A stretch of DNA of 64,000 nucleotides, from contig JAMWBK010000002.1 of NCBI GenBank assembly GCA_029953675.1, positions 1-64,000 on the forward strand. The letters are read 5' to 3'. Numbering within the stretch: the first letter of the stretch is position 1; the number at the start of each line of letters is the position of its first letter. This stretch comes from Rhodosorus marinus CCMP1338 (lineage: Eukaryota > Plantae > Rhodophyta). A program made the translations under genes and the position numbers. The notes beneath the pieces were generated by a model that was not told where the DNA came from, searched no databases, and worked only from the letters and a program-made list of their open reading frames with translations. Shown one piece after another: positions 2,836-63,339 of the stretch.

Positions 2836-3563
2836 ATGAGTCAGGGTCAGGGGGGTCATCACTGCCCAACATCAACTGGACTGTGGCAACGTAGGCACGA
2901 CGAAATCTGCAGAGAGCTGGCACGGTGGCTGACGAACGAATGGTTTAATCGGAGGCTGAAAAAAAAAACCCCGAGGGGGTTAAGGCGATGGAACTTCATG
3001 GACGTAGAGCAAGAACCTGAGGGGTACTTCGAGAACTACGGACTGCGACCTGATGTCGTTGCTAGGCATCCGAGGACCAAACAAAGGTATGCGCTGGATG
3101 TGACGGTGGTGTCACCATTACAGGGAAAATATTTGCGTCGGAGCCCAGATGATAGCGGATACGCGGCGAGAGCTGCGGAGAAGTGGAAAATCGCTCACTA
3201 CAAAGAAGCGATGGTGATGGAGAAACCGGATGATAAGTTCATCCCGATAGCAATAGAGACGTTTGGGCGTACGGGGCAAATGGCACAGGAGTTCCTCCGG
3301 GACAGCTGCAAGCACTTACTGCACAGGAGTGAGGAGCTGAGAGACGTGAGATCGCAGATAAACCGGCAACTATGGCGAGGTAACGCAGAGATAGCATTAG
3401 GCGCTTTGCGCGTGGACCAGTTGGAGAATCCGCTGGTGCCTGTTTTTTCTTTTGAACGTAGCATGAGACCCCGGTAGCGGGGTTCCAGTAAGTTTCTCCC
3501 TAGATAGGATTAGACATAGTGTTGCGCTGCAGTAGGCAGCTGCCCACTAAAGCTTACGGTTAC
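2836..3563 (+). mobile_element. 5'-truncated family A element (RLE domain + 3' UTR) with a 51-nt antisense family B tail insert
   Basis: HHCPTSTGLWQRRHDE (CCHC end), LRPDVVARHP...YALDVTV (PD-D/ExK), ends MRPR*. The 3' UTR ends AGCTTACGGTTAC. Insert at 2933-2983. Confidence 0.9.
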
Positions 3564-3580
3564 GTTAGTCTGGGGTTACG
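3558..3580 (+). repeat. Telomere-like 16-mer junction tract (GGTTACGTTAGTCTGGGGTTACG)
   Basis: Lies between the 3' end of one family A copy and a 5'-truncated next copy. Confidence 0.75.
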
Positions 3581-3624
3581 CATCAACTGCTCAAAAGAAC
3601 TTCAATCAGTGACAGGACGTCTGA

Positions 3625-4665
3625 ATGAGCTCGCCAAAAAACCGCATATGTGGCAAGACGGACGAGCCACTACGACCCCGCCTCAACCCCCCGCAGCAGC
3701 ACCCGCGGACGGCCGCGGTCAATCAACATGCGGCAGAACCCATCATCAATCAACTTGCGGAGGGGACAGGTGTCCTTGCCTCACTGGACTATGCCACGGC
3801 CTTCCCTGTTGCCGGTACCAGCAGCACACGGCCAACGTACGCTCAGAGGACTGTCCAAAGTACTCCAGCTCGAGAATCAGAGGCTCAACTCCGACCAGCC
3901 GGGCGCCCGGGCCCACAGAGCCAGCAGGCAGCGCTGCGACAGTTGCACGCCACTGTGGGAGGGTCCTCCTGGGGACCTGAGACCAAGCCGGTACTGGCGA
4001 CCCTGAGGAATGTAAGACCGCCACGGTTGGACGAGGTAGCCCCATCGGATTTCACTACGGTTCTTTGCAGAGCCTTGGGGATTCCGAGCTCTTATGTAGC
4101 GCACGTGGACTTCATCGCTTCCCACGCGTGCTTACTCTCACATCCGGACGCGATTCCGATTCTACAAAGCGCCATCTCTCGGGGCGTTTTCAGGACGGGC
4201 ATCTTCGGTTCGTTCACCCAGAGACACCCCGATCGGCAAGTGACTCTCTACACGGGCCAGGCACTGGACACAGACAACCTGTTGGGCTATAATGAACGTC
4301 AGCTCATTGCCCCAGCGAATATCGGGGCTCAGACCCTGAAACGGGCGATTGAACAGACTATCCGGATCCGCGCGCGGCTTCGCAAAAGGCAACTCTCGTT
4401 CAACACACTCGCAGCGATACACGAGTACCTGGAGAGCAGGCTCGGAACCCTACAAGCCACACAACGTACTCAAACGGTACCCGGGGAGAGCGCGGAACCC
4501 CCAGCGCCTGCCGCCGCCACGAGCGCAGACCCTGAAGCCTCGTCCCTCACAGGAGACGCACAGGCAGCCCGTGGGACAGTCGACGCTCCGGGTAATCCCT
4601 TAGAGACTTCCCAAGTACCTGAAGAACCAGCTGCCGAGGATAACCCTCACGCAGAGCTCCTCTGA
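3625..4665 (+). pseudogene. Family A ORF1 (gag-like), 5'-truncated and frameshifted
   Basis: Near-identical to 20844-22082 at the start. A 1-nt deletion near 4663 (CTCTGAACC vs CTCTGCAACC) creates an early stop. Confidence 0.8.
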
Positions 4666-4846
4666 ACCTCCCCGAGCCTCCTCAACACAAGCGGTCGCGA
4701 GTAACCACTGATGGCACAGGCCAGGATACCGAGATGATTCTCGCAGCCCCAGAAGCACCTCAGCGAGATACACATGCCCAGACCCACTCCGCAGCCCACG
4801 ATAATGCGATGGACATCCAGACCAGTCAGGAAGACACAACCCAATA

Positions 4847-6862
4847 ATGCCGAGCCGACATAGGGGAATCAAACGCAGACGGGAAGAACCTCTTTTCTTC
4901 TCCAAGCGACAGGACTGGATTGAACGCTGGAATGTTTTCGTTAACGATATCACGGACAGAGGAAGGTTGTGGACTCGCCTCGCACACTGCCCCGTCCCTA
5001 CTCGACGCTTCGTACCTCGCGCACACGTCAACGACTGGAGCAGACTCCTTCGGGTCGCCCTGGAGCTGACAATGGACCGCGGCGCACCAGTGAATGCTAG
5101 CCTCTTCCTCTCCGGGCTCCCAGGATTGGTTCTCGGGTACACTGCTCTTCCAATCGGCACGCAGTTCACGCACGTACTCGAAGGCGAGTTTCACACGGTC
5201 TGGACTGCGCTCGAGGAATATGCCTCCAACCAGACCCTTCGTACTGCCCTAAGCGGACCTGAAATAGACCAGAAACAGGCGCAAAGGCGGCGAAAACAGG
5301 CCCTGAAATTGGCACATCTCGGACGCCTCTCACACGCGGCCCGCAGACTGCAGGCCACCGAACTGGCTCCATTTACCAACGCTACGTGGCAACAACTGGA
5401 GGAACTCTTTCCGGACCAGACGGAGTGCTCCCTACCGGTGGATGTCGATCAAGCCCTACAAAACCTGCTCTCCAAGGACACCGATAATCTCCGGAGAAGA
5501 TGGAATGCCCGACTAGCAGCAGACGAAGGTATCCTCGCGATAATAGCCCGGCTTCCCCAAGGTACTAGCCCCGGGCCTAGCGGACTCCGAGCAGAACACC
5601 TGCAGGGAGCCACCCAGAACGTCCAAGTGGCTCTAGTCCGCGTTCTCCGGCAACTTGCTACGGCACCAGAGAAGTTTCCACCCCAGATGACCCGGGCAAT
5701 GCGTAGCAGCAGACTACTGCCGTTTGAAAAACCCACGAGCAACACAACCGTTGCAGCGAGACCTGGCATCCGGCCGATCGGAGTCCCCGAAGTCCTCCGA
5801 AAGGTGGCCACACAGTGGATCCTTCGTTCGGTCACCGACCGCGTTAAGGAACTGCTCATACCTCTACAACTGGGCATCGGAGTTAGCGGTGGTTGTGAAC
5901 GATCACTACACGCGATCCAGGCACAGCTCTCGTGCGAACCTGACGCCGTCGTCTTACGGCTCGACCTGGAGAACGCGTTCAACCGCATTGACCGCCGCAT
6001 CGCAAAGCAAATCCTGGACCACCATTTCCCCGAGCTGAAAGCCGTGTACCGGCTTGGCTACGGAAACGACAGCACGGAAGCTCCTACACTCTTCGGATGG
6101 CGTGATAACCACGATGCAGACCAAGACGACACCCACCGCTTGACACTTCGGGCCAGAACGGGAGTTCAACAGGGAGATCCCCTAGGACCGATCCTACATG
6201 CGCTCTCCCTGGCGCCTTTCTTGGAAGCATTGCACAACAAAGCACCTAATTTAACCATTGTGGCAATCCATGACGATATCACCATCGTAGGGCAGCTACC
6301 ACTACTGAAAGACGTACTACACTGGGGACAGGCACTACTACCCTCACTCGGAGCCCGACTGCAGCTTGCCAAGTGCACATTGTACGGCACCTCGATGACC
6401 ACGCCACGACTGGTCAGCCGCGAGATCCCTGGCGTCACGACGACGCGAGACGGAGTTACAATCCATTCCATTCCGATTGGAACTCGCGCTTACATCCAAA
6501 GCGAGTGCCGGCGGCTACAAAACAACCACGAGAAACTATTTAAGGAGATAGTGCACCTGCCCCCTGAAGAACTGACTACGAAACTGGCCCTCTTCCGTTA
6601 TTGTTCTGAACCCCGCCTGGACTACTTTCTACGCTGCCTCGCCTGCCCCTTTGGAAGAACACTTGCACGGGAAGCGGACGCCCTGACGCGTTATCACCTA
6701 GATACACTATTTGGAGGCCTCACTACTACGACCATCGAGGACCCTGACTACGAAAAATCTACGCTAGACCAGATAGCACTCCCCTGTCGCTGGGGAGGAC
6801 TGGGCTTTGCTACGAGACAGCGGATCCAGCCCATCGCCTTCTACTGGACTTTACTAGCATAG
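4847..6862 (+). pseudogene. Family A ORF2 reverse transcriptase, 3'-truncated by an antisense family F insertion
   Basis: SPGPSGLRAEHLQ, RPIGVPEVLRK, RLDLENAFNRIDR, TGVQQGDPLGP, VAIHDDITI, LPCRWGGLG. Homology stops at ~6847. Confidence 0.9.
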
Positions 6863-15474: not shown

Positions 15475-15835
15475 TTTACTGGGCAGCTGCCTACTGCAGC
15501 GCAACACTACGTCTAATCCTATCTAGGGAAAAACTTGCTGGAACCCCGCTACCGGGGTCTCATGCTACGTTCAAAAGAAAAAACAGGCACCAGCGGATTC
15601 TCCAGCTGGTCCACGCGCAAAGCGCCTAATGCTATCTCTGCGTTACCTCGCCATAGTTGCCGGTTTATCTGCGATCTCACGTCTCTCAGCTCCTCACTCC
15701 TGTGCAGTAGGTACTTGCAGCTGTCGCGGAACTCTTGTGCCATTTGCCCCGTACGCCCAAACGTCTCTATCGCTATCGGGATGAACTTATCATCCGGTTT
15801 CTCGATCACCATCGCTTCTTTGTAGTGAGCGATTT
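15475..15835 (-). mobile_element. Family A 3' fragment inserted antisense into a family B copy
   Basis: ...ERSMRPR* plus 3' UTR on the minus strand. B sequence resumes at 15836, with ACCC duplicated (15470-15473 and 15836-15839). Confidence 0.8.
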
Positions 15836-16021
15836 ACCCCTGATAATTGAGTGCTTTGGGTTCATGGACTCTGTTGGTTCTCGCTGGCTTCGGGAGTTGT
15901 TCCGTGAACGCCCTGACCGTCTTCAATCGTTGTTTACCCGCTTAAGGTTCTTCGCCGCACTTCCCGTCTTTTTTTCCCCTCGAGGTTTTCTCTTTCAGCC
16001 TCCGATTAAACCATTCGTTCG
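15836..16021 (+). mobile_element. Family B 3' fragment
   Basis: LIIECFGFMDSVG... followed by the CAGCCTCCGATTAAACCATTCGTTCG tail. Confidence 0.8.
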
Positions 16022-16524
16022 AATTAACCTTTCTGATTGGACTGAGGAAATTCCCTTCAATATTAGAACTGTATGGAGACCGAATCTCTACCAATTAATG
16101 AAAATCAGATTGCCTCTAGATATACACCGATTCCATATTCGAGCTATTTTTTCTTCCAATCATCATCCTGGTGCGGAGCGTACGTAACGTAACCCCAGAC
16201 TAATCATGATGATGATTGGGGTAACGTTCGGAAATTCCTTTCAACATGAGAACTTTGTGGAGACCGAATCTCTACCAATTAACATAAAATCAGATTGCCT
16301 CTAGATATACTCCAATTCCATATTCGGACTGCCTCTAGATATACTCCATTTCCATATTCGAACTATTTTAGGGTTATGTTAGGCTGAGCAAACGCAAACT
16401 TTGACTAAATTTAAGCATGTTTAAAAATGCGAATTTCAGCTAAAAGGGTGGGCTGCTAAGTGCCAAGTGGTGGTTGTACGGACAGTAGAACTGGAGTGTG
16501 TTCCTCTGTCGTTAGTCTGGGGTT

Positions 16525-16926
16525 AGGCTGGAAGAACTCTGGCACGCGAGGCCGACGTGATGACCAGATATCATCTGGAAATTCTATTCGGAGGCCTCGC
16601 TACGACAGCTGTAGAGGACGATGAGTACGCAGAGCTGATCTCGGACCAAATCGCTCTGCCCTGCCGCTGGGGAGGTTTGGGTTTCGCTACTCGAAAGCGC
16701 GTCCAACCCATCGCGTTCTACTGGTCATGGAGAAACACCCTCCGGAACAATGAAGATGAATGGCCATACCTGACTGAACTAGAGCGGGAGGTTACGGCAG
16801 AACGCTCACCAGACACATACGAGCCGATGGAGCAACGATGGTCGACTGCACAGCTGGCGGACCAGATCTGTGCATCGTCGCGAGCAATACAACGGAGGCT
16901 CGGACCAGAAACCCCGCCGCGGATCT
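16525..16926 (+). mobile_element. Internal family A RT-thumb fragment bracketed by telomere-like motifs
   Basis: Matches 46070-46470 (reverse complement). Preceded by CGTTAGTCTGGGGTTA (16510-16524) and followed by TCTGGGGTTA (16924-16933). Confidence 0.85.
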
Positions 16927-16950: not shown

Positions 16951-19900
16951 GGCACGAGCGCGACGGGCCGATGGCCATGGGGAAAAACGTCGCAATGCGC
17001 AAGTAATTCGGTTGGCCACCGTTGGCCGACTTTCTGCAGCCGCCCAGAGACTTGAGGCAACGGATCTCGCCCCTCTGAAACCATCCACCTGGCAGGCTCT
17101 CCGGGAGCTTTTCCCCGCTGAGCCAACAACACCGCTACACGAGGAAGTGGAATTGGAGCTCCGACGTATCCGCGAACAAGGCAACACACACCCTCCACGA
17201 GTGTGGAACCCCGCAGCAGCGAGCGAACAGTCCCTTTTCTCTGTGATCAACCGACTTCCAGCCAAAACGAGCCCCGGACCCAGCGGACTGAGAGCAGAGC
17301 ATCTCCACGCCGTTACACCTGCGAATAAGCCCAGATTGGTTAAATTTCTGCGACTCCTAGCAGGGAAACCTGAGTCGTTCCCGTCCATACTTCGTCAGGC
17401 CCTTCGTAGCAACCGGTTGCTTCCGTTTATCAAACCACAAGCAGAAGGAGTGGCGGCTGAGGGACGCTTCCGACTGAGACCGATTGCCGTTCCAGAGGTT
17501 TTGCGCAAGGTCGTTGCGCAGTGGGTAGTAGGAGGAATCTCTGGTCGGCTAAGCGAGTTCCTAGTTCCGCAACAGCTGGGGATTGCCGTTCGGAGCGGAT
17601 GCGAACAAGCGTTACACGCAGTACAGGCCCACCTCTATTACGAACCACAACACGCCTTGCTAAAACTGGACCTGGAGAATGCATTCAATAGGATTGACAG
17701 ACGACTGGCGGCTCAAGTTGCGGCGGCTTCATTTCCAGAGTTACTCCTTATCTTCCAGCTCGCTTACGGCTCATGTGCGAATGAGTCTCCAATGCAGTGC
17801 GGATGGACAGAAATGGCCGAAAGCGCTGGGAGAGTCAAAGACAGGCTGTATCTGAGAGCAAGCACTGGCGTTCAACAAGGAGACCCCGTGGGACCCGTAC
17901 TTCACGCGCTCGCACTGGCCCCGTTCCTTCGGGCCCTGCGACGCAAGTTCCCAGAACTGACGCTGGCGGCAGTACACGACGACATTTCTCTGGTGCGTGA
18001 TTTACAGGTGCTTAAAAGTGCTTTAAATTGGAGTGAAGAGGCACTCATCGGGATAGGAGCGAAGCTACAGCGATCCAAATGCCTCATCTACGCACCGAGA
18101 CTGGACACACCACGTAGGATAAATGTGGATATTCCGGACATTCAGGTCACGCGTGAGGGGACTACCCTGTACTCTATTCCCATTGGAAGGCGCCAATACG
18201 CGGAGGCAACATGCAGGACTATCCAAACACGTCATGCAAAGCTCGTGAACGCACTTCAACGTCTCCCAGAGTCGGAATTGCACGTTAAGTTAGCGATTTT
18301 CCGATACTGTGCGGGAACACGCCTTGATCACCATACCAGAGGCCTGGCGTATCCACTGGGCCGGACCACCGCCAGGGAAGCCGACGGCATCACCCTTGCA
18401 GAACTGGAAGGGTTATGTGGAGGACTGAGACACCATCAAGACATAAGCGGAGTTGAGACACACGTGGTGGAGCAGCAGATTCGACTGCCATGTCGATGGG
18501 GAGGGCTAGGGTTTGCTATGCGGACGAGGATTCAACCGGTCGGTTTTCACGCTGGGTGGAAGCAGAGTCTTCAGCAGAATATCACTCAGTCAGGTTACCT
18601 TAGGGGGCTACTTTTGGACTGTATTTCGCTTGCGGATGGACATCAGCGGTGTGAGATCAGTATGCAGTGGACCACGGACGATCTGGCGGTGCAACTTGTA
18701 GCGGCAAGCCATGCGGTACAGAGGAGGCTATCACCATCGACGAGTGCACGGATCAAGAGGCTAGCGGAATGGCAACCATTAGCAGACTGTGCAAGAGGAA
18801 CTGAGACGGATCCGAGGAGTTCCGGAGGATATGACGGTCCCATTCAAAAAACGCTCTGTCGAGAGTGCCACCGTCACGCCTTCGAGATACTCACGGAGTG
18901 TGCAACGGTGGAGGACGTAGACAGGGCAAGAATCCGGTCGGCGGCAGGGACGGGTTGTGGTGTATGGCTCAGAGACTGCCCTAACGTGGGTCCGCGGAAA
19001 TTAAGTCGGGATGAGATGATCTCGAGCATGAGGATGCTTCTGGGGCTACCCCTACCTGGACTCGGCCGGTCATACAGTTGCACAGTCTGCGAGCAACCAC
19101 ACGATGTGCGTGGGATCCAGCGGCTGCACCACTGCAGGACGTCATCGGGGATACATTAGTCTGGGATGCAACGGTGGAGGACGTAGACAGGGCAAGAATC
19201 CGGTCGGCGGCAGGGACGGGTTGTGTTGTATGGCTAAGAGACTGCCCTAACGTGGGTCCGCGGAAATTAAGTCGGGATGAGATGATCTCGAGCATGAGGA
19301 TGCTTCTGGGGCTACCCCTACCTGGACTCGGCCGGTCATACAGTTGCACAGTCTGCGAGCAACCACACGATGTGCGTTGAATCCAGCGGCTGCACCACTG
19401 CAGGACGTCATCGGGGATGCGCACAAAGAGGCACGACGAGCTGAAAGTCGAACTGAGTCGCTGGCTACACCTATGGAATTTCACAGAGATAGTAGTAGAG
19501 CCTCAGGGGTTCTTTGCTGGGTCCGGAATCCGACCCGATATTGTAGCACGGCACCCGACGAGTGGTTGCGTGTACGTGGTGGACGTGATGGTAACATCGC
19601 CACTTCAAAGGAATCAGTTGAGGCATACGAGTTGGAGCTGCGGATACGCTGCGAAACAAGCAGAACAAGCGAAGGCGTTGCATTGTAAGGAAGTGCTGAG
19701 GGTGGAAAACCGAGACCTAGTTTTTGTGCCGTTCATTTTGGAGACTTTTGGTCGAATGGGAGAGGCAAGCCTGGAATTTCTTCGCAAAGGGACGGCGCAT
19801 CTGCATGATCGTGATTCCCACCTGTCGGCGGTGAGAGGTCAAATCAATCGGATCCTGTGGCAGCAAAATGCTGCTTTAGTTGAACATGCGATGGAGAAAG

Positions 19901-20040: not shown

Positions 20041-20056
20041 ACGTTAGTCTGGGTTA

Positions 20057-45042: not shown

Positions 45043-48000
45043 GTAACCGTAAGCTTTAATGGGCAGCTGCCTACTGCAGCGCAACACTACGTCTAATCCT
45101 ATCTAGGGAAAAACTTACTGGAACCCCGCTACCGGGGTCTCATGCTACGTTCAAAAGAAAAAATAGGCACCAGCGGAGTCTCCAGCTGGTCCACGCGCAA
45201 AGCGCCTAATGCTATCTCCGCGTTACCTCGCCATAGTTGCCGGTTTATCTGGGATCTCACGTCTCTCAGCTCCTCACTCCTGTGCAGTAGGTGTTTGCAG
45301 CTGTCGCGGAGGAACTCTTGTGCCATTTGCCGCGTACGCCCAAACGTCTCTGTCGCTATCAGGATGAACTTGTCATCCGGTTTCTCGATCACCATCGCTT
45401 CCTTGTAGTGAGCGATTTTCCACTTCTCTGCAGCTCTCGCCGCGTATCCGCTATCATCTTGGCTCCGCCGCAAATATTTTCCCAGTAATGGTGACACCAC
45501 CGTCACGTCCAGCGCATACCTTTGTTTGGTCCTCGGATGCCTAGCAACGATATCAGGTCGCAGTCCGTAGTTCTCGAAGTACCCCTCAGGTTCTTGCTCT
45601 ACGTCCATGAAGTTCCATCGCCTCAGCCACCGTGCCAGCTCTCTGCAGATTTCGTCGTGCCTACGTTGCCACAGTCCAGTTGATGTTGGGCAGTGATGAA
45701 ACCGTTGTACCCCAGTCCTTCCGTGTTTACTCCGGCAACTAGTGCACTTCTCGGTGGTCCGCAATCCCGGAATTGGCAGCCCCAGCAGTTGTCGAACGTT
45801 TACCTGCATCCCAACCGCACTCAATTTTTTCGGTGTCAGCGTTGGTATTTCACGCAGCCAGACTCCCGACCCGGATCCCGCGGCGGACCGTATTCGAGCT
45901 CGGTTTTCAGGGGAGATTCGTGGGTTGGTGACCAAGCTTTGGAATGCACAATGGTGTGCCTCTCGAGAGAGGGTTTGTTGTATTGAACCATTATTCCAAG
46001 CTGCAGTCTCGCCCGGTGCGCTTCGAAGAGATGTTTCGCGCGGTTGTTGCAGGGTGGTCAGTGCCAAGATCCGCGGCGGGGTTTCTGGTCCGAGCCTCCG
46101 TTGTATTGCTCGCGACGATGCACAGATCTGGTCCGCCAGCTGTGCAGTCGACCATCGTTGCTTTGTCGGCTCGTATGTGTCTGGTGAGCGTTCTGCCGAA
46201 ACCTCCCGCTCTAGTTCAGTCAGGTATGGCCATTCATCTTCATTGTTCCGGAAGGTGTTTCTCCATGACGAGTAAAACGCGATGGGTTGGACGCGCTTTC
46301 GAGTAGCGAAACCCAACCCCCCCACCGGCAGGGCAGAGCGATTTGGTCCGAGATCAGCTCTGCGTACTCGTCGTCCTCTACAGCTGTCGTAGCGAGGCCT
46401 CCGAATAGAATTTCCAGATGATATCTGGTCATCACATCCGCCTCGCGTGCCAGATTTCTTCCAAACTCGTATGCGAGGCATCGTAGAACATAGTCTAGCC
46501 GCGTTTCCGCACAGAACCTGAAGAGGGCAATTTGCGTCGTAAGCTCCGGTTGTGGGAGCTTGGCAATTTCCTCAAAGACTTTCTCATGCTTATTTTGCAG
46601 CCCGCGGCACTCCTGTTCGATAAATTCTCCGCTGCCTATCGGTATCGAGTGGATGGTGACTCCGTCTCTGGTCACTTGGACTCCAGGAATCTCATGGTTG
46701 ACCACTCGCGTGGTAGTCAGTGTTCGCCCGTACACAGTGCACTTGCCGAGTTGCAGGCGTGCTCCAAGAGAGGGGAGCACAGTTTTTGCCCATGCCAGGG
46801 ATGCCTTCAAGGCTTGTAGCGACCCGACAATCGTGATATCGTCGTGGATAGCAACAATAGTTTCGTTGGGGAACTTGGCTCGCAACGCTCTTAGAAAGGG
46901 CGCCAGGGATAGTGCATGTAGTGCCGGCCCCAGTGGATCTCCCTGTTGGACTCCTGTAGCTGCTTGGAGTGTCAGGCGAGAGGTGTCGGTTTCGTTCTGC
47001 CCAGGGGAAGATCGCCAGCCACGGAGCGTCGGTGAGTCCGCGTTGTCGCTTCCATAGCCAAGTCTATACACTGGTGCAAGCTCCGGGAAGTGCTCGTCCA
47101 CCAGTTGCTTAGCAAGGCGTCGGTCGATGCGGCTAAAGGCATTCTCCAGGTCTAGCCGAAGGACCGCCGAATCGGGTTCGCATGACAAATGGGCCTGGAT
47201 CGCGTGAAGTGAGCGTTCGCACCCGCCACTTACTCCAATACCCAGTTGTAAGGGCACCACGAGCTCACGCACCCTGTCCATAACCGCGTGAAGAGTTCAT
47301 TGCGTTGCTACCTTGCGCAAAAATTCTGGTACTCCGATAGGGCGAACTCCGGGATGTTCCTGCGGCACTGAACCCTTGTTGGGCTTCGCGAAGGGCAGGA
47401 GTCGACTGCTGCGAAGGGCGCGGGTCAGAGCCGGGGAAAATTTCTCCGGAGCGGTCGCGAGTTGTCGCAATAAACGAATCAACGCCACTTGCGTCTGTTG
47501 AGTTGCACCTTGGAGGTGTTCCGCTCGGAGACCTCTAGGGCCTGGGCTCTTGCCCTGAGGAAGACGTGCCACGATCGACATGAGGCCCTCGTCGGCCGCT
47601 TTTCTTGAATTCCACCTCCGCTTAAGTGTTTCGGTATTCAGAGCGAGCAAAGATTCCAGGGCTTGTGCAATCTCGTCTGGTAAGTCACCTTCCGCCGGGT
47701 CGGGAAAGAGCGCTTGTAGTTGTTTCCACGTAGCCGCGGTAAAAGGTGCCATTTCGGTGGCCTGTAGGCTCCGAGCTGCATCTGAAAGGCGGCCAAGGTG
47801 TGCTAGTTTCAACGCTCGCTTGTGGCGCCCGAGATGTTTGCGTCGAACCGCTTCAGCTCCTTGCGGTGCGGTAGTATGCGACAGCATAGACGCCTTGTTC
47901 TCTAGAGCGCTCCGGACCGTAGAGAATTCTCCTTCAAGCACGTGCGATACCTGAATGCCAACATCAAGTGCAGAGTGTCCAAGGACAAGGCCTGGAAGTC

Positions 48001-49977
48001 CGACAAGAAGCAGGCTGGCGTTTGTTGGTGCGGTGCTGTCCATACTGAGCTCTAATGCAGCACGGAAGAGGCAGCTCCATGTATGGACCTGGCCGCGTGG
48101 CACAAATCGCCGTGTGGGAACCGGGCAGTGTGTAAGGCGCGTCCACTGCCTGCCTCCCTCGGTGACGTCGTCGACGAAGACGCTCCACCGTCTGATCCAG
48201 TCTTGACGATCCGAGAAGAACAGAGGCTCGTCGCGGCGTCGTTTGATTCCCCTACGTCTGCTCGGCATTATTGCGCTGGGTTTTCCTGGCTCTCCTGCGT
48301 GTCCATCGCGTGATGGTTGCCGTCTAGGGCAATCTGTGTCACAGTGGTATCATGTGCAGTCTCCACGGCTGCCGGAGTCATCTCAGTATCCGGTCCGGTG
48401 CCATCGGCGGATACTCGCGAGCGCTTCTGTTGAGGTGGCTCCGGGAGGTTGCAGAGGAGCTCCGCATGGGGGTTGTCCTCGTGTACTGCGTTCTCAGGTA
48501 CTTGGGAAGTCGCGCTGGTCTCAACCGGGGCGTCAACTGTCCCACGGTCTGCCTGTACATCCCCTGGAAGGGACGAGGCTTCAGGGTCTGCGTTCGAAGC
48601 GGCTGCAGGCCCAGGGGGTTCCGCGCGCTCGCCGGGTACCTCCTGCGGATGTTGTCTGGCTTTTAGGAGCTCTAGTCGTCCCTCCAGATACTCGTAGAGC
48701 GCTGCGAGAGTGTGGAAGGAGAATTGTCTCCTGCGGATCCTCGAGCGAATGCGGATAAGCTGCTCGATGGCCCGCTTCAGCGTGTGGGCAGCGATATCCC
48801 CGGGAGCGATGGTCTGACGTTCGAGGTAACCCAGAAGGTTGTCTGGGTCCAGCGCCTGGCCAGTGTAAAGGCTTACTTGTCGATCGGGGTGTCGTTGTGT
48901 GAAGGATCCGAAAATCCCAGTCCGGAAAACTCCTCGGGAGATGGCACTTTGGAGAATCGGAATTGCGTCTGGATGGCACAGCAGGCAGGCATGGGAGGCA
49001 ATAAAGTCCACATGCACCACATAAGAGCTGGGCATACCCAGTGCTCTGCAAAGAACCGTTGCAAAGTCCGCAGGGGCCACCTCATCCAGCCTTGGGGGTC
49101 GGACATTCCGTAGCGTCGCGAGGACTGGAGCAACATCGGGTCCCAACCAGACCCCCCGACCGTAGCGTGCAGTTGCCGCAGGGCAGCCTGCTGGGTTTGG
49201 GGTCCGGGGCGTCCAAAAGTTCTGGAACGAGCATCTCCTTCTCTCCCTGGTTCTTTCTGAGCTGCAAACTCGGCGCAGGTTGGCCTTGTAGGGCCCTCCC
49301 CGATGGCTGGGAATGCCTCCGCATAGTGTCCTAGATCTCGGACACCTGTCCCTCCCTGGGGCGCAGGGAGCCGGGTTCCTAAATCATGGACGTCATAACT
49401 TCCTGGCAGTCGACCGTTACGGTAACCGGTTTCGGGGGCGAGGTGGTTGCCTACGGCCTGTCGCGGGAGATCATGCGGAGATGGTGCAGAATTCGTAGTA
49501 GAATTCGTAGTAGCGGCTCCACCTTCCCACATACCCGGTTTCCGGGACAACTCCGTAAGGCGCCCGGTGACGCCTTGCAGCTCTTGAGAGCTGTTGACCC
49601 GCGAGTACAGTTGAAAAAAGGCTTTGTAGAAGTCTGTAATTTCGGACGCAGCGATGCCCAGGTCCTGGTAGCATCTGTCGAAGCTACGCAGTCGATGCAA
49701 GAATGTGGCTGCCGGGTCGGTTGTGGCTCCAGACTCGGTCCGCGTTCTTGCTTGAACATCGCCTGCTTGTGGTTCCGTCGGTGCCTCCTGCACGTCGCCA
49801 TCAGACTGGTGCTGGTGCCTTTGCAAAACTTCCCGGGTGCCCGAGGGGTCCGGGCCCTGAATGACAAGCGGTTCGGGGTACGGCCCGCGTACCTCCCTCA
49901 CAATCATCTTCGGACTCTCTTACGAACTTTTCCTTTTGTCTTCCTTACGAACTTTTTCCTTTTTACCCCGTAAACCG
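45043..49977 (-). mobile_element. Near full-length (~4.9 kb) family A CRE-like element, two ORFs, three inactivating lesions
   Basis: ORF1 49907-48268 (1-nt deletion near 49141). TAATG overlap into ORF2 48268-45129, which has TGG>TGA at 47297-47299 and a 1-nt deletion near 46320. RT VAIHDDI, CTSCRSKH..FHHC, RLE, and the conserved tail. Confidence 0.92.
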
Positions 49978-50490
49978 GTAACCGTAAGCTTTACTGGGCA
50001 GCTGCCTACTGCAGCGCAACACTACGTCTAATCCTATCTAGGGAAAAACTTACTGGAACCCCGCTACCGGGGTCTCATGCTACGTTCAAAAGTAAAGACA
50101 GGCACCAGCGGATTCTCCAACTGGTCCACGCGCAAAGCGCCTAGTGCTATCTCTGCGTTACCTCGCCATAGTTGCCGGTTTATCTTTAACGTCTCTATCG
50201 CTATCGGGATGAACTTGTCATCCGGTTTCTCGATCACCATCGCTTCCTTGTAGTGAGCGATTACTTCTCCGCAGCTCTCGCCGCGTATCCGCTATCATCT
50301 TGGCTCCGCCGAAAATATTTTCCCTGTAATGGTGACACCACGGTCACATCCAGCGCATACCTTTGTTTGGTCCTCGGATGCCTAGCAACGATATCAGGTC
50401 GCAGTCCGTAGTTCTCGAAGTACCCCTCAGGTTCTTGCTCTACGTCCATGAAGTTCCATCGCCTCAGCCACCGTGCCAGCTCTCTGCAGA
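49978..50490 (-). mobile_element. 5'-truncated family A 3' fragment, head-to-tail with the previous copy
   Basis: RLE and tail. Its 5' junction abuts the motif tract TAACCCAGACTAATGTAACCCCAG (50491-50514). Confidence 0.88.
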
Positions 50491-50781
50491 TAACCCAGAC
50501 TAATGTAACCCCAGTGATCGTAAGGGCCGCTGGGGTAGAATTTTCCCCACACGTATATTGTTGAATCTACTGAATATTTGCATCTGGTAAAATGGGAAAA
50601 CCTGCGCTTGTCGGACTTACTCCATATATTGTTGAATCTACTGAATGTTTGCATCTGGTAAAATAGGGAAAACGTCCTCCTGTTGGCGCATGGTTGTAGC
50701 CGGACAGAACGACACCAGCAGGGCCTGGCCGACAACGGAGAAAGCCAGGAGACGTCAGGCTAGGCGAGACCAAGGGGTAAC

Positions 50782-57804: not shown

Positions 57805-58211
57805 ACATGGTGCTGTTCAAAGCTGTCCCTAAATACCGACCCATCACCAAATATGAATCATCAACCCGCTATCTTTGGTAGCAACTCAACGCCTACCTCG
57901 CCCTTCCGTGCTCTGTGGCTTCACCTGCATGGGACGCAAATCCACCGTTCTTAGCCTTCAACCGGGACAAAAGCGCGCTGAACTTTTTGAATGAATGTTT
58001 TCTTATTCGAAGACTGAGTAGAAGGCCTTCGGTTTTGGCCCACACTCGCCATCGCCGCCTGGGCTTGCACGTTTTTTACCCTCCTACAGTCCCTGTGACG
58101 TCCTGACATGACATCTGGCTCAACGTATCGGTGAGCTAAAAATAACCATCGTGCATACACATTATAGTACGGCCTAGATGGCCGACTGTTGGCTTACGTT
58201 AGTCTGGGGTT

Positions 58212-58381
58212 TGAGACACCATCAAGACATCACCGGTCTTGAGGTAAAAGTGGTTGAGCAGCAGGTTCGACTGCCCTGCCGATGGGGAGGACTTGGGTTT
58301 GCTCTGCGGACGCGGCTCCAACCGGTAGCATTTCACGCTGGGTGGAAACAGAGTCTTGAGGAGAATATTACACAGTCTTGT
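58212..58381 (+). mobile_element. Internal family C-related RT-thumb fragment bracketed by telomere-like motifs
   Basis: RHHQDITG..QVRLPCRWGGLG similar to 18425-18595. Motif tracts at 58194-58211 and 58382-58395. Confidence 0.85.
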
Positions 58382-58497
58382 GGTTACGTTAGTCTCGGCT
58401 AAGAGATTTGCCACAATTAGTCTGGGGTTGGACTTTGGAGTTTATCGTGGTGATAAAGTTACGCTTTCATTCTTTCTACGAACGCTTATCGAGTGAT

Positions 58498-60018
58498 ATG
58501 ACTACTCTCGAGCCCGTGCCTCCGGATGGGGGGGGCTTTTGCACAGACGCAACGATGGAAGACCTCCCGGCCGTTAGCCTGAGGGCAGACGGACCCGAGC
58601 CTCTGCCAGTACCTGTTTCTGAGCCTACAACTGCATCTGCACTTGACAACGACGTACCTACTCCCTTGGCAATTGACCTGAGCTGCGGAGCGCTGAAGCT
58701 GCATCTCGACGCGCCCAAGCATAAGACCCCGCTCTACAATGGGCTTATGCTGCGGTTTATGGGTCTCTTAGCCCAGGCACACGCCAATGGCACCGAGGCT
58801 CAACTCCTTCACAATCTGACTACGACGCCACAACAAGCTGCACCGAGGGCACAACGCCCCCTCCCTGTCTACGAACCAGCAAACTACGCCACTGCAGCAG
58901 CCCGCCCGCGATCTCCCGAGACACGTGATCTCGATTCCAATGCATTCCCAGATCTCGCAACGGCCAATGAGCAAGCACGGACAAGGACTCGAGCTCAACC
59001 TCAACCAATGAGCTGGACGACACGTGTCCGCGCCAACCAGATCCCAGCAGCTGCCAATCGCTCGTTTTTCGCGAGCATTCATGGGCTGCAGTACCAGAGC
59101 CAGAAGGACGTTGATGCATTTGTGCTACTCAATGCTCGACCTCGGGACTCCACCAGAAGCAAGGCCCATCATGCTTGGGATATCGAGCGCCTAGCCGGCC
59201 TTCAGAAAAATTCGCTGCTCCAGCTGGACTACTTTGATCATCATGTACACGTCATCGCTCATCATACCGCCTTCCAACTACTCCGCGACGCTACCAACGC
59301 AGGGGCCTTCGAACCCACCAGAGGAGCACACCTGCCTCCTGATCAACGTATCCAAGCTGTCAAGCTCTCTCCAACGTCACACGAATACCTGAGCATGAGG
59401 GAAAAGCTCCGTCACCAACCGGCAGACTATCCCCGCGCTGCACTGATCCACAACCTGCTCCGCTACCGACGGATCCAGCGGATTGTTACAAATCGCAGGA
59501 GTCTCCCACCCAACAACCGAGAGGCACTCCTGGGCCACGTCAGGGCCGAGCTCGATCGCACCCTGGCCAGCCTCCACGCTCAAGCTCAACGAGCACCCGA
59601 CAGTTGCCTGCGCGTGCCATTCTCCGACCCTGAGCTTCCAGAGCACTCGACAACAACCGAGCGCAGAGAGCCACGCTCTCTGGACCGAACCCGGGTAGCT
59701 GACCCTCAACCGGCGGCACTGGAGAGGGAGAGTGCGGAACCCCTCGCAGCGACTACGCATAGCGCTGATTCTGCCCAAGTCCCAGCCGCTCGGGAGGACA
59801 ACACGCATGAGACGCCTGCCGCGACAGCCCGTGATCCACTAGACTCGGAGCCTGACCCCTCCACCACTAGCGATCAACCAGTGACCCCTGCAGAGCCGAT
59901 GCAAGGACTTTCGACGGCCCAAGACAAGAGACAAGTGGCTCCACCCACTAAGCGCCCTAAGCCTGCCAACGCCGTCGACGACCTCACGCCCGACTCCCTC
60001 TCGTCGACTCAATCATGA
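58498..60018 (+). CDS. Family D ORF1 (gag-like, homologous to family A ORF1)
   Basis: Open frame (ATG 58498). LLNARPR...LDYFDHHVHVIAHH..FQLLRDA..GAF aligns with family A LRNVRPP...VDFIASHACLLSH..IPILQSA..GVF. ATGA overlap with ORF2. Confidence 0.75.
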   Translation: MTTLEPVPPDGGGFCTDATMEDLPAVSLRADGPEPLPVPVSEPTTASALDNDVPTPLAIDLSCGALKLHLDAPKHKTPLYNGLMLRFMGLLAQAHANGTEAQLLHNLTTTPQQAAPRAQRPLPVYEPANYATAAARPRSPETRDLDSNAFPDLATANEQARTRTRAQPQPMSWTTRVRANQIPAAANRSFFASIHGLQYQSQKDVDAFVLLNARPRDSTRSKAHHAWDIERLAGLQKNSLLQLDYFDHHVHVIAHHTAFQLLRDATNAGAFEPTRGAHLPPDQRIQAVKLSPTSHEYLSMREKLRHQPADYPRAALIHNLLRYRRIQRIVTNRRSLPPNNREALLGHVRAELDRTLASLHAQAQRAPDSCLRVPFSDPELPEHSTTTERREPRSLDRTRVADPQPAALERESAEPLAATTHSADSAQVPAAREDNTHETPAATARDPLDSEPDPSTTSDQPVTPAEPMQGLSTAQDKRQVAPPTKRPKPANAVDDLTPDSLSSTQS

Positions 60019-63000
60019 GCAGCTCCTCAGACGAATATACTCCGAACCGCTCTCGCTCATCCCGCCGTGCTCGTGCTCGTCGCCAACGACCTCCCACTTC
60101 GACGCAGTCACTCTTCGAGACCGACTCGAACGCCTGGCTCTCGTCTCTGCACGACTTCACTCTCAACGTAACCGATAATGGCAACCGCTGGTGGCAGCTG
60201 ACTCAGGCTCCGACGCCTACTCGCCAATTCGTCCCCGATAACCTGAAAACACGCTGGAACCATCTCATGTCGAAAGCCCTGGAACTTGCCCTTGATACGT
60301 CAGCGCCGAACCTGTCACGCCTGTTCATCTTCGCTCTCCCTAGTCTCGCACTCGGCTACACACGCGACCTGGCCCCTTCTGCGCAGATGCTCGCCGTTAT
60401 GGACGGAAGGTTCTCCACGGTGTGGGAACACCTTACTGCTCACAGCAAAACCCTTGACACCAACTGTATCGTACCTCCGCCGCCTCAGACCCGCCACCGA
60501 CAGAAACGAGCCCTACAACTCGCCAAAGCTCAACGTATGTCCCAGTCTAGCCAACTCCTACTGGCCACCGATCTTGCCTCGAAGACTCCTGCCACCTGGC
60601 GCGTTCTGACTACGCTCTTCCCTGAGTACGAGGCCGCAACACTCTCCTCGGAGCTTGAAGACGCCCTACAGGCAAAGCTCAACGGACTGCAACGCAAGAT
60701 ATGGAACCCGACTTTGGCCTCTGACGAGAGCCTCCTGTCAACGCTGGAACACCTACCGTACGCCACAGCCCCCGGGCCGAGTGGACTCAAAGCCGAACAT
60801 CTGCGAAGTCTCACCATGACAACGCAACCGGTACTTGTACGCTTCCTTCGCAAGCTTGCCACCACTCCGGAGAGCTTCCCTGACGTGTTTCTCGAAGCCA
60901 TGCGCAGCAACCGACTCCTCGCGAAAGACAAGCGAACGTCTGCCGAAGCTAGACAAGGGTACCCTCTTCGCCTACGACCGCTAGGGATTCCTGAGGTACT
61001 GCGGAAGGCCGTCACCCAATGGACACTTCGCGCTGTCGCCACGCCCCTTCGCGACTTTCTGCTCCCGGAACAACTCGGCATCTCGGTCAGCGGCGGCTGC
61101 GAACACGCCATCCACCTCGCGGAAGCCCACCTCGCAGCGCGCCCAAATGACGTGCTCCTCAAACTTGATCTCGCAAACGCGTTCAACAGAATCGACCGAC
61201 GCCTCGCAAACCGTATCATCGAGCTAGCTTTCCCCGAATTGAAGTCGCTTATGACAATGAGCTACGGACCACGAGGCGAGAGCGCCCCACGCCAATTCGG
61301 ATGGCGAGACAGCGATGTCGATGACTGGCTCCAGCTCCGAGCCTGGACTGGAGTCCAACAAGGCGATCCGTTCTGACCTGCTTTACACGCGCTCGCCCTT
61401 TCCCCACTCCTACGAGCACTACGAGACCGGTTTCCGAGGATCACCCTTAGCGCAATCCACGACGACCTCACCTTACTTGGCCCTCTGAAGGACGTGAAAG
61501 AAGCGCTACACTGGAGCGAGCACCACCTCCCCGAAATAGGCGCACAACTTCAAAGGACGAAATGCGAGCTTTTTGGACTCCAACTGCCGACGACCAGACT
61601 CGTCAACAGGGAAATTCCCGACGTACATGTCACCCGGGACGGAATCCAACTTTATTCCATCCCTATTGGCACACGGACCTACGTCCAAGACGCGAACAGG
61701 AAGCTACAACGAGAACATGAAAAACTCGTCCAAGAGGTCATCCGTCTACCGACCACTGAGCTACCAATTAAACTGTGCCTATTCCGCTACTGCGCAGGAC
61801 CGCGTCTAGACTTTGCTCTACGCACGCTCGCCCTACAATACGGAGCCACTCTCGCACGCGAAGCCGATCGCATCTCGCTCCTGGAACTCGACAAACTGTG
61901 CGGCTCGCTCCTCGAAGGCCAGGGCCTCACAGGACCCGCAAAAGACGTGGTCGAAGCGCAGATCCAGCTCCCTTGCCGATGGGGTGGCGCAGGCCTAGCG
62001 ATGAGAACACGAATACAACCCCTCGCCTTCTTCAGCAGTTGGCGACAGACTCTGAAGCTCAATTGGACTGGATCTAGCCACCTAGGAGCGCTACTCGATG
62101 CCTGCACATCGACGAACCTGACCGAGCACCACCACATTCGACCCCTGCTCCACTCGACGGATCAACTTGGAGCACAACTAATCGAAGCGAGCCTCCACTC
62201 AAAACGCTGCCTGGCACGAGGAACACCGGCCCCCATACTCCGCCTAACAGAATGGCAATCGTTGGAGAGCCAAGAACAAGCAGAGAACCCGCACACACCA
62301 CCCGACAGGCCCTTGATCGGTTCAACCCAAAAACTCCTCTCCAACTGGAGTCACCGACGGGCATTCGAGGAAATGGTGGAGAACGCGGAGATCAGCGAGA
62401 CGGCACGTGCGCGAATACGCTCCTGCAAGGGATCAGGAGGCGGTACTTGGCTGCGAGACTTGCCAAGGAAACACGGACGCGGCCTAAGTAGCGGAGAACT
62501 GAACCTGAGCTTTCGACAACTGTTGGGATTGCCCCTGCCGAGCGTACGAATACTTAGTACGTGTACGATATGTTCCCAACCACACGACGCTGCAGGCATT
62601 CAACGCCTCACCACTGCACCAGCTCTACCGGGAGCTGGACAATTCGGCATAACATGGTCAGGGACGCCCTGGCGACAGTGCTGAGACAATGGCGACTAGA
62701 AGTGACAATAGAACCGACCGGACACTACCAAGGCAGTCGGCTTCGGCCTGACATTCTAGCCCGACACCCACGAACAGGCAAGCTCTACGTGATCGATGTG
62801 AAGGTGACCTCGCCTTTGCAAAGAACACACCTACACAAAGCGTCTTGGGAGACCGGGTATGCGGCACGGAAAGCGGAAAAGTTTAAAGAGTCCAAATACC
62901 GTGACAGTATCGGAGAACATAACGACGACATCTTCGTCCCCTTCTGCCTGGAAACATTTGGGCAGATGGGACAACAAGCGAATGAGTTCCTCAAGGAAGC

Positions 63001-63166
63001 GACTATACACCTGGATCAGCGGGCAACGCAAGTAAGTGAGGCTCGGGCGATCTTGAACCGCACTTTGTGGAAAGGAAACGCTATCCTTGCCACCCAGGCT
63101 CGTCGTGTCGACGAAGCAGACTATGACATCGTCCTTATCTTAGAACGTAGCCACACAACCCATTAG
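60015..63166 (+). pseudogene. Family D ORF2 (RT-CCHC-RLE) with one nonsense codon and one frameshift
   Basis: APGPSGLKAEHL, KLDLANAFN, TGVQQGDPF*P (TGA 61374-61376), AIHDDL, LPCRWGG, CTICSQPH, frameshift near 62610, LRPDILARHP..YVIDVKV. Confidence 0.9.
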
Positions 63167-63339
63167 GGGTTTCTTTGCTGACCAATAGGATCCTTATTGC
63201 TTCTTAATGGGCTCCAATAGGGAGTTCTTCAGTAAAGTGTACGCGGTTACGTTAGTCTGCATTTCGCATGAACACCGGACGCGAATTCGATCGGCCGCCG
63301 GGTCAGGTTCGGGGATATGGCTGCGGGAGCTGCCGCTGC

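Follow-up and report, generated by a model that had tools for sequence, protein, structure and literature searches.

MoTeR1 and MoTeR2 of Magnaporthe oryzae and FoTeR of Fusarium oxysporum are non-LTR retrotransposons with a reverse transcriptase (RT) and a C-terminal restriction-like endonuclease (RLE), which insert into the 6-nt telomeric repeat TTAGGG and occur as many 5′-truncated copies with short interstitial repeat tracts between them; the 3′ flank of FoTeR is TAACCC, the C strand (PMC12857005). SART1 and TRAS1 of Bombyx mori (R1 clade) likewise enter telomeric repeats with base specificity, through target-primed reverse transcription, and their arrays coexist with telomerase repeats (PMC10088271). 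LINE arrays at protist and algal chromosome ends are formed by GilM/GilT of Giardia, assigned to the CRE clade (PMC10088271), and by L1-like Zepp of Chlorella. The spliced-leader RNA gene is the target of CRE1, CRE2, SLACS and CZAR of trypanosomatids, site-specific non-LTR elements in which the RLE lies C-terminal to the RT. Telomeric repeats of yeasts consist of 8-26 nt units in budding yeasts and of GGTTAC(A)G0-6 in fission yeast. In Archaeplastida, telomeres of the TTTAGGG or TTAGGG types and AATGGGGGG are known, a long unit of the kind described below is unreported, and red-algal telomeres outside Cyanidiophyceae have been reported as unknown (PMC3622300; PMC7046594). Telomeres were marked on 12 contigs in the genome paper of Rhodosorus marinus, with the sequence not given.

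The DNA analysed here (the window) was a stretch of 64,000 nt from R. marinus CCMP1338 (GCA_029953675.1, contig JAMWBK010000002.1, positions 1 to 64,000). The identity of its elements as RT- and RLE-encoding non-LTR retrotransposons, proposed in a preliminary description made from the letters alone, was borne out by a domain scan, by RLE motifs and by Foldseek. At least three diverged families were distinguished, namely A (with subfamilies, of which A2 is 70% identical to A), C and D, whose RTs are about 45-50% identical between families, and the encoded protein runs from the RT through a CCHC motif to the RLE. The RLE motifs (C-x2-C-x12-HHC-x9-RHD-x20-E-x10-RPD-x14-D) follow the order of MoTeR/FoTeR (CCHC - RHD - E - R/KPD - D/E), and the C-x9-RHD-x20-E spacing is identical to the MoTeR1 formula, whereas E and RPD are separated by 10 residues here and by 49 in MoTeR1 (PMC12857005). 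The CRE-clade membership first proposed is tentative, the likeness to MoTeR1 lying in this motif spacing. The best Foldseek matches of the modelled endonuclease were R2 proteins, with a model of low confidence (pLDDT 49.7). RVT_1 was the sole Pfam domain in the scanned ORFs, which therefore carry no AP endonuclease.

SART1 has the G-strand orientation seen in the R. marinus elements; SART1 and TRAS1 have an AP-type endonuclease and poly(A) tails, whereas an RLE and a repeat-mimicking 3′ end without poly(A) were found here. MoTeR and FoTeR are fungal, whereas at least three diverged families share one site in this red alga, in a 16-nt unit with one putative fixed nick site, and the G-rich strand rather than the C strand follows the 3′ end, so that the orientation is opposite to that of FoTeR. 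GilM/GilT and Zepp are not red-algal, and insertion at one fixed position within a long repeat unit is unreported for them; unlike the CRE/SLACS group, the present elements are found at a telomere-like repeat. This repeat, GGGGTTACGTTAGTCT, which includes a GGGTTA core and a GGTTAC unit of the fission-yeast type, resembles yeast telomeres in its long unit, C in the G strand, shortened variant units and both cores, although the long and irregular yeast repeats belong to fungal lineages.

Seventeen full or partial copies of the motif were counted in the window, in agreement with the preliminary estimate: 14 sites with the core TTAGTCTGGGG and three with GTTAGTCT alone (22951, 58388 and 63251). 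The core occurred 15 times with at most one mismatch, including one match at 8727 (-) that looks like chance and was removed. The exact 16-mer was found once, at 37204, and sites with up to two mismatches numbered 10 (nine on the plus strand, one on the minus), versus 0.03 expected from shuffles. At least 12 of the 17 copies adjoin elements of families A, C and D, and the motif strand was the element sense strand wherever the adjoining element could be assigned, as had been claimed. No tandem run longer than 1.75 units (37204-37231) was found in the window, and the sequence preceding that run is unique within it. The features are collected in Table 1; no intact element copy was found within the window.

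Table 1. Element copies and motif sites in the window, with strand.
Position	Strand	Feature
2856..3563	+	Family A 3′ fragment (A positions 4264-4920), end ..TAAAGCTTACGGTTAC
3564..3579	+	Motif GTTAGTCTGGGGTTAC, between A 3′ end and 5′-truncated A2
3580..6845	+	A2 element, 5′-truncated; RT 4892-6859; cut at 6845 by family G insertion
15475..15841	-	A 3′ fragment
16511..16528	+	Motif GTTAGTCTGGGGTTAGGC, upstream of 5′-truncated A fragment 16529-16950
16951..19152	+	Family C element directly after GGTTAC of A fragment; RT ORF 16838-19159; stops at internal GGGGAT, therefore 3′-truncated
19153..19166	+	Motif ACATTAGTCTGGGA, joined to 3′-truncated C copy by GGGG(A)T microhomology
19167..20042	+	C 3′ part (CCHC, RLE, 3′ UTR), end ..GGCTACGGGGTAAC
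20043..20052	+	Motif GTTAGTCTGG
20053..20356	+	A 3′ fragment
20357..20369	+	Motif variant GTTATTCTGGGGT; 20370 also T
20370..20521	+	A 3′ fragment, 151 nt
20522..22950	+	A2 with internal deletion, exactly between GGTTAC and GTTAGTCT
22951..22958	+	Motif GTTAGTCT, then C-like fragment 22959-23181
29123..29146	+	GGGTTTACGTTAGTCTGGGGTTAG, upstream of 5′-truncated A3 fragment (aligned 29146-29701; 1-base overlap at 29146)
29764..29775	-	GTTAGTCTGGGG, head to head with plus-strand GTTTCTGGGGTT
29795..30128	.	Two A-type 3′ ends, tail to tail: plus to ~30069, minus 30070-30128
30132..30143	-	Motif GTTAGTCTGGGG, upstream of 59-nt minus-strand A 3′ fragment
36497..36896	-	A 3′ fragment
37204..37231	+	GGGGTTACGTTAGTCTGGGGTTACGTTA, 1.75 units; only exact 16-mer and only tandem run of the window
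44504..45020	-	Second family A copy, 5′ end (A positions 1-496)
45021..45042	-	Variant tract ATTAGTCTGGGGGTCTGGGGTT between full-length A 3′ end and next A 5′ end; two A's after the tract assignable to it or to the downstream element
45043..49962	-	Full-length family A, 4920 bp: long N-terminal region, RT, CCHC, RLE; frame broken by frameshifts
49963..49977	-	Degenerate tract CGGTTTACGGGGTAA between A 3′ end and full-length A 5′ end
49978..50491	-	Two A 3′ fragments, 49978-50185 and 50188-50491
50493..50512	-	GGGGTTACATTAGTCTGGGT, upstream of A fragment
58190..58211	+	TGGCTTACGTTAGTCTGGGGTT (then TGAGAC..), first junction past host gene
58212..58387	+	C-like internal RT fragment (alignment from 58212), 3′-truncated at its own internal GGTTAC
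58388..58429	+	GTTAGTCT, 21-nt filler and TTAGTCTGGGGTT, directly upstream of full-length D
58430..63250	+	Full-length family D, 4821 bp; one stop and frameshifts
63251..63258	+	Motif GTTAGTCT, past D 3′ end
63261..64000	+	A-like 5′-truncated element (from A position 4046), running past window end

The junctions were as first described: A and D end in ..TAC(GC)GGTTAC and C in ..CTACGGGGTAAC, each followed by GTTAGTCT, and full-length copies begin directly after ..TCTGGGGTT(A) (A at 45020 (-) and 49962 (-), D at 58430). In an alignment of seven junctions, drawn from three data sets and representing three families, the columns T-AC-(G/A)TTAGTCTG were invariant and the 3′ UTRs diverged. All families share the insertion point TTAC^GTTAGTCT, for which they may compete.

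It had been noted that the motif might be part of the 3′ end of the elements themselves, and the junctions speak against this. Four A 3′ ends, at 16950, 20521, 36497 (-) and 49978 (-), are without a motif next to them, and at three of these a whole later insertion lies exactly between GGTTAC and (G/A)TTAGTCT, with the motif at its own 3′ end (16950 to 19153, 20521 to 22951 and 49978 to 45042). The motif is also carried by a C copy broken at the internal site 19152, where the native sequence is catcGGGGATGCGCAC, and by a C-like fragment broken at 58387, where it is AGGTTACCTTAGGGGG. Although GTTAGTCT comes after GGTTAC at most 3′ junctions and TTAGTCTGGGGTT(A) stands ahead of every full-length 5′ end, it is very improbable that the 3′ UTR ends in GTTAGTCT.. 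or the 5′ UTR starts with TTAGTCTGGGGTT, given the motif-less ends, the motif after 3′-truncated copies and non-LINE sequence, its presence ahead of 5′-truncated copies, which could not have brought a 5′ UTR, and its identity across families with differing UTRs. The motif originates from the target.

Most RLE clades target multicopy genes (PMC4640811). The motif is loosely like a tRNA D-arm, and it could lie in a gene for spliced-leader RNA, snRNA, tRNA or rRNA, in the manner of CRE/SLACS, Utopia or R2; yet no Rfam family or tRNA was found in the window, the conserved flank never extends past the 16-nt period, and the motif occurs in tandem with that period, which makes such a target scarcely credible. 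The window is repeat-rich and includes a 435-bp duplicate (15003-15437 and 26478-26912, 100% identical). Chimeric joins of such repeats during assembly would be a hardly tenable explanation of the junctions, which are base-precise across families and recur in the window, in the R. marinus long-read assembly and in a transcriptome contig.

The window had been taken for one telomeric array, which did not hold: at least five clusters, oriented either way, form a mosaic and are kept apart by two intact host ORFs, by LTR elements and by the non-specific LINE family G. In a subtelomeric locus, GCA_029953675.1 JAMWBK010000007.1:2188318-2210882, which reaches to 1917 nt before the end of a 2.2-Mb contig, host genes extend to about 8 kb and transposable elements alone lie beyond. 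Window copies are closely related to those at this locus (G copies 97.6-98.8% identical, full-length D copy 99.55%), and all five of its TTAGTCTGGGG cores are on the strand running 5′ to 3′ toward the contig end. A tandem array of the 16-mer was present 3.6 kb from the end, the terminal 1917 nt lying outside the locus. With a period of 16, it comprises GGGGTTACGTTAGTCT twice and then GGGGTTAGTTTGTCT, GGGGTTATCT and GGGGTTA (positions 20866-20936 of the locus), that is, two perfect and three shortened units in phase, with the G-rich strand toward the contig end. It begins at the truncated end of the second copy of M, a non-LINE repeat (copy 1, ..AAGTACCTGGAGGCC..; copy 2, ..AAGTACCTGG|GGTTACGTTAGTCT..); the join has CTGG microhomology, is preceded by no element 3′ end, and looks like de novo telomere addition, as when telomerase heals a break. 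Past the array, the same families all face outward: an A-like 5′ end starts directly after GGGGTTA, this copy is 3′-truncated and capped by 1.75 units, and a 5′-truncated D copy follows, with its end predicted about 500 nt before the contig end.

The array, the outward G strand and the healing-type join lend further support to the preliminary proposal of a telomeric repeat, and from them we infer synthesis by telomerase: GGGGTTACGTTAGTCT, with irregular shortened variants (GGGGTTATCT, TCTGGGG), is most likely the telomerase-made repeat of R. marinus. With it, ordinary red algae (those not from hot springs) would have a workable telomere sequence for the first time. The element endonuclease would nick the C-rich strand at TTAC^GTTAGTCT, and the freed 3′-OH would then act as primer for reverse transcription of the RNA, the last bases of which (..TACGGTTAC) resemble the repeat's left half; the sense strand would therefore be continuous with the G-rich strand, with the element 3′ end toward the chromosome end. 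Incomplete reverse transcription would give 5′-truncated copies, and full-length copies would be attached to the target immediately past GGGGTT(A). New insertions would use the first repeat unit beside the resident element, therefore leaving 0-16 nt of repeat between elements. Since the elements have their 3′ ends toward the outside, a chromosome end that erodes would lose the 3′ portion of its outermost element first; re-capping of the stump by telomerase would then yield 3′-truncated copies with the motif after them. The window clusters are best explained as internalised or interstitial relics of this process, with no live chromosome end. To this explanation as a whole, from a telomeric 16-mer and RT and RLE families at one site to erosion, re-capping and relic clusters, a probability of roughly 0.78 was assigned.

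Several points count against a telomeric repeat. The longest array seen is about 4.5 units and interstitial, clusters in both orientations between intact genes are unlike a simple chromosome end, a 16-nt unit and two C's in the G strand are unusual outside yeasts, and the telomeres marked in the genome paper could consist of some other repeat. If each insertion duplicated its target site over a variable 0-16 bp, one copy of the motif would likewise be restored every time, with no need of a tandem array. The target might be non-telomeric and self-propagating: the endonuclease would recognise the resident 3′ end plus GTTAGTCTGGGG, and since each insertion would duplicate 0-16 bp, the motif would be regenerated and arrays would grow wherever a seed copy lies, short tandem runs being by-products or a subtelomeric satellite. 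Spacers before 5′-truncated downstream copies are indeed always 16 nt or less, gene-adjoining clusters occur in both orientations in the window, and half of the site is supplied by the element 3′ end GGTTAC. Such a target is nevertheless unlikely, since the subtelomeric array comes after a non-LINE sequence that is truncated, no element 3′ end lying ahead of the array, and holds two perfect and three shortened in-phase units, every motif at that locus faces the contig end, and the full-length A copy has flanks that do not duplicate each other. The motif has also been kept while the elements diverge by at least 25%: in a JGI transcriptome contig of a relative, the elements are 72-76% identical, and the junction reads ..AAAGCTTACCGTTAC|GTTAGTCTGGGGTTA| followed by a 5′-truncated copy, with an identical junction motif.

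The exact 16-mer GGGGTTACGTTAGTCT occurred once in the window, at 37204, and sites with up to two mismatches to it numbered 10 against 0.03 expected from dinucleotide shuffles. When one mismatch was allowed, the core TTAGTCTGGGG was found at 15 sites in the window, one of which (8727) resembles chance, and GTTAGTCT alone was kept at three more; these core and partial sites match the total of about 17 copies counted in the preliminary description. The motif strand was the sense strand of the element at every site where a neighbour could be assigned, as had been described. The longest tandem run in the window was 1.75 units (37204-37231), and dimers of canonical telomere repeats (TTAGGG, TTTAGGG, AATGGGGGG and similar units) were absent from it.

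Seven RT-bearing copies were located in the window by tblastn with the homologues found, and families were delimited by self-comparison and by mapping of reference copies. Pfam RVT_1 was detected in the C, A2, A and G ORFs (E 4e-11 to 2e-7) and was the sole Pfam domain in the element ORFs scanned, so that no AP endonuclease was found in them. In each family the residues C-x2-C-x12-HHC-x9-RHD-x20-E-x10-RPD-x14-D lie 3' of the RT, and the CCHC and PD-(D/E)XK-type nuclease residues C-terminal to the RT were invariant in six sequences. The best Foldseek matches of the RLE model, a poor AlphaFold model (pLDDT 49.7), were the R2 proteins 9dou, 9nl2, and 8gh6 (E 3.6e-4 to 3.3e-3); a PDB sequence search with the RLE domain gave no meaningful match, and the RT matched L1 ORF2 (1e-4) and R2 (0.19) weakly in PDB. 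LTRs were lacking, and many fragments shared a common 3' end with varied 5' starts, the 5'-truncated form found in the RLE group, so that the RT-RLE description first made from the sequence holds. RLE elements are divided into five clades by RT phylogeny (PMC4640811), and the spacing C-x9-RHD-x20-E equals that of MoTeR1 in the formula quoted in the FoTeR paper (PMC12857005), a likeness that is no more than suggestive of membership in the CRE clade. Nothing on record matched the window ORF 16838-19159 exactly, and the relatives returned by a metagenome profile search had at most 35% identity and carried no motif. A conserved 3'-UTR hairpin, GC-GCTGC-AGTAG-GCAGC-T-GC, lies about 25 nt before each A, C, and D 3' end in four distinct sequences, with two compensatory pair changes in D and G-U changes in C, and may be an RNA element recognised by the RT.

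Coordinates of elements, repeats, and host ORFs in the window and in the contig-end locus L083
Feature	Region	Positions	Strand	Remarks
Family A, full-length	window	49962->45043	-	4920 bp
Family A, subfamilies A2 and A3				70-88% identity
Family C	window	16951-20042		
Family D, full-length	window	58430-63250		
3'-UTR hairpin, examples	window	3524-3543, 20003-20022, 63211-63230		
LINE family G	window	6843-7789, 23237-~27400, 27881-29071	-	
LINE family G	L083	13165-16334, 16335-16919, 19067-19743		
Repeat M	window	997-1198, ~2010, ~2150, ~15410, ~16000		unclassified
Repeat M	L083	11550-13164, 19782-20866		
Paralogous ORF, ~1300 aa	window	9214-13137	-	intact
Paralogous ORF, ~1300 aa	window	53959-57804	+	intact
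LTR-retrotransposon remains	window	38344-39336	+	Tf2-type integrase SH3 domain
Copia-type remains	window	40761-42981	-	gag, zinc knuckle, RVT_2
Direct repeats	window	39529-40147, 43877-44514		~620 bp
Minisatellite-rich region	window	30422-33014		35-mer x3, 44-mer x4, 188-mer x2
(AATCGGGAGGATA)x16	window	31907-32108		
Duplicate	window	15003-15437, 26478-26912		435 bp, 100% identity, 11.5 kb apart

The A and D elements end in ..TAAAG(N2-3)TAC(GC)GGTTAC and the C elements in ..GGCTACGGGGTAAC, and in most copies GTTAGTCT follows directly. When seven junctions were aligned (A, A2, C, D, the full-length A copy, and two external copies), T-AC-(G/A)TTAGTCTG was invariant with diverging UTRs, and one specific site, TTAC followed by GTTAGTCT, was common to A, A2, C, D, and the copies of L082 (a JGI transcriptome contig from a relative) and L083 (the R. 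marinus locus JAMWBK010000007.1:2188318-2210882). Four A 3' ends had no motif after them. At the A 3' ends at 16950, 20521, and 49978 (-), a complete later insertion lay exactly after GGTTAC, and its own 3' end was followed by (G/A)TTAGTCT; because these insertions sit exactly between the two sequences, the priming nick is placed at TTAC^GTTAGTCT. Full-length copies start directly after GGGGTT(A), and 5'-truncated copies have 8-16 nt of GTTAGTCT(GGGGTTAC) left in front of them.

Two breaks separate the motif from the element ends. At 19143-19166 a C copy breaks off at an internal GGGGAT, with ACATTAGTCTGGG next to it in place of the native catcGGGGATGCGCAC, which is seen 266 nt later. At 58380-58395 an internal C-like fragment breaks off at its own GGTTAC, and GTTAGTCT stands in place of the native AGGTTACCTTAGGGGG. 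The motif is thus present also after copies that lost the 3' UTR; it derives from the target and is not the elements' own 3' end, which the preliminary description had named as a way in which its reading could fail. As for another multicopy target such as an snRNA gene, the window gave no match in Rfam and tRNA scans, and a tRNA D-arm was rejected as the target since no tRNA remnant adjoins any junction.

The nearest named relative of the window RT was a Rhodosorus marinus protein, a longer isoform of which, taken from the cluster listing, maps to JAMWBK010000007.1:2198318-2200882 (GCA_029953675.1), on a contig of 2,212,799 bp whose end is 12 kb away. L083, the locus around it, stops 1917 nt before the contig end and contains ordinary host genes to about 8 kb and transposable elements only thereafter. 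Identity between the window and L083 was 97.6-98.8% for family G and 99.55% over 1117 nt for family D, which assigns the window to R. marinus or to a strain very near it. All window copies are damaged by frameshifts or stops; family D was recently active, since its L083 copy has an open frame in the part that a stop interrupts in the window copy. The A-like, A2-like, G, and D elements of L083 are all oriented toward the contig end, and in all five TTAGTCTGGGG cores and in a motif array the G-rich strand runs 5'->3' toward that end, the orientation expected of a telomeric repeat.

The array (L083 20866-20936; period 16, 3.6 copies, 95% matches by Tandem Repeats Finder) reads ctGGGGTTACGTTAGTCT GGGGTTACGTTAGTCT GGGGTTAGTTTGTCT GGGGTTATCT GGGGTTA and passes directly into the 5' end of the A-like element; near the end of this 2.2-Mb contig, tandem motif was seen as a 4.5-unit array 3.6 kb away and a 1.75-unit tract 3.1 kb away. 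The array starts at the point where copy 2 of the 1.1-kb non-LINE repeat M ends. Copy 1 of M reads ..GCCGCCAAGTACCTGGAGGCCTTG.. and goes on into unrelated sequence, and copy 2 reads ..GCCGCCAAGTACCTGG and then GGTTACGTTAGTCT.., being broken at ..CCTGG and continued by the motif in phase. This join has a 4-nt microhomology and no element 3' end before the array, and from its sequence it looks like telomerase healing of a broken end, not like a product of target-primed reverse transcription. The motif also caps three further 3'-truncated elements, which fits de novo addition to broken ends. The A-like element beyond the array ends after about 475 nt, where TTAGTCTGGGGTTACGTTAGTCTGGGG caps it, and beyond this come a 10-nt inverted motif piece (L083 21432-21448) and a 5'-truncated D copy; the predicted end of the outer D copy lies about 500 nt before the contig end. 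Internal priming alone was rejected for the 3'-truncated copies, since the sequence joined to the 70-nt array at the M junction is non-LINE. In the genome paper of R. marinus a telomere is reported on 12 contigs, and the repeat sequence is given in neither text nor supplements.

With a probability of roughly 70%, R. marinus and its relatives have a 16-nt irregular telomerase-made repeat, (GGGGTTACGTTAGTCT)n, and chromosome ends built by erosion, healing, and at least three outward-facing RLE LINE families that cut the same phosphodiester bond. Several such families would nick the C strand at one bond in the somewhat irregular repeat, and their 3' ends, which mimic its left half, would pair with the nicked target. 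Element 3' ends would face the chromosome end because the sense strand would be continuous with the G strand, an orientation opposite to that of FoTeR, whose 3' flank is TAACCC (PMC12857005). Terminal erosion and healing would leave 3'-truncated copies with repeat caps. In the main rival reading, the site is not telomeric and each insertion renews it by a target-site duplication of variable length (0-16 bp); this accounts for the single-unit spacers, but it leaves unaccounted for the M junction, the shortened in-phase variants, and the outward direction shared by the elements and motifs close to the end of the contig. If the repeat is telomerase-made, the telomerase RNA template would hold about 1.2-1.5 units of AGACTAACGTAACCCC.

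The transcriptome contig L082, reached via the RLE homologue P0020, reads ..AATAAAGCTTACCGTTAC, then GTTAGTCTGGGGTTA, then a 5'-truncated copy, and has no close match to L083. Its motif is identical at 15 of 15 bases and its elements are 72-76% identical to those of the window, so the target is conserved well beyond the elements. Scans for tandem and junction patterns returned 0 hits in metagenome, GTDB, and viral contigs, sets not expected to include this alga; the metagenome contig set did not return the related JGI transcriptome contigs, so the JGI sample is evidently missing from it. A transcript of a family F relative (L001, JGI Ga0186194_100135, 4100-4187; 83% to window 1-995) has the 3' end ..AATAAAGCTCAC followed by AGTCTCCCCCGAGG and not by the motif; family F may have another insertion site or lack one.

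The preliminary description had taken the window for a single telomeric array. This did not stand: elements and motifs lie on both strands in at least five clusters, between which are two intact host ORFs, LTR-element fragments, and the non-specific LINE family G. None of the window clusters is terminal; they may be seeds of interstitial repeat or former ends that became internal. Two A 3' ends are fused tail to tail at 30057-30083, the motif meets its reverse complement head to head at 29764-29790, and inverted motif pieces lie within the inverted repeat CCAATCATCATC..GATGATGATTGG at 16158-16231. The first two palindromic junctions hint at fold-back rearrangements; fold-back repair or template switching may be the origin of the palindromic joins of the window and of L083 21432-21448.

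Long telomere units are known in yeasts; if the present reading is true, long, complex units would reach beyond yeasts; mesophilic red algae would have their first usable telomere sequence, and Archaeplastida their first unit of this kind. The literature searched contains no report of a red-algal unit of 16 nt or of RLE LINE families that share a site within it, and a search with the motif in all rotations found no relevant paper. Knowledge of red-algal telomeres has a recognised gap beyond the hot-spring Cyanidiophyceae: in three red-algal classes no success was had with known probes in telomerase (TRAP) assays, dot blots, or BAL31 digests (PMC3622300), and the information was still called 'missing or fragmentary' in a 2020 review (PMC7046594). 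The 16-nt candidate makes the question testable, as a probe, as a telomerase assay primer, and in a telomerase RNA search. To the telomere-specific LINEs already known (SART/TRAS, MoTeR, FoTeR, GilM/T, and Zepp; PMC10088271) it would add a red-algal instance, in which several diverged families at one nick site offer an unusually clean system for target reading by the RLE, together with a record from which erosion and healing of chromosome ends can be read.

Family G is not motif-specific, because the flanks of its three window copies all differ, and it accumulates in the same regions as the motif-inserted elements. Its RT is about 32% identical to the others, its copies are 98-99.6% identical, and its 3' end, ..CTAGTAAAGTCCAGT, is followed in L083 by (AGTAAAGTCC)n. 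Repeat M has ends like TTAAACCATTCGTTCG and interrupts the RT genes of two different LINE copies, and one R. marinus M copy is the sequence truncated and capped by the 16-mer array. The two ORFs of about 1300 aa are 34% identical end to end, each with a start resembling a signal peptide and a Gly-rich collagen-like stretch. They had no Pfam domain and no match among 5.8 billion clusters, and when 1.84 billion representatives were scanned in full with HMMER, only four relatives came up (best 39% identity). By these sequence features they are a putative orphan secreted family between the element clusters. The direct repeats flanking the copia-type remains include part of the 5' region of family A, and the 435-bp duplicate is either a true duplication of very recent date or an assembly error (collapse or expansion).
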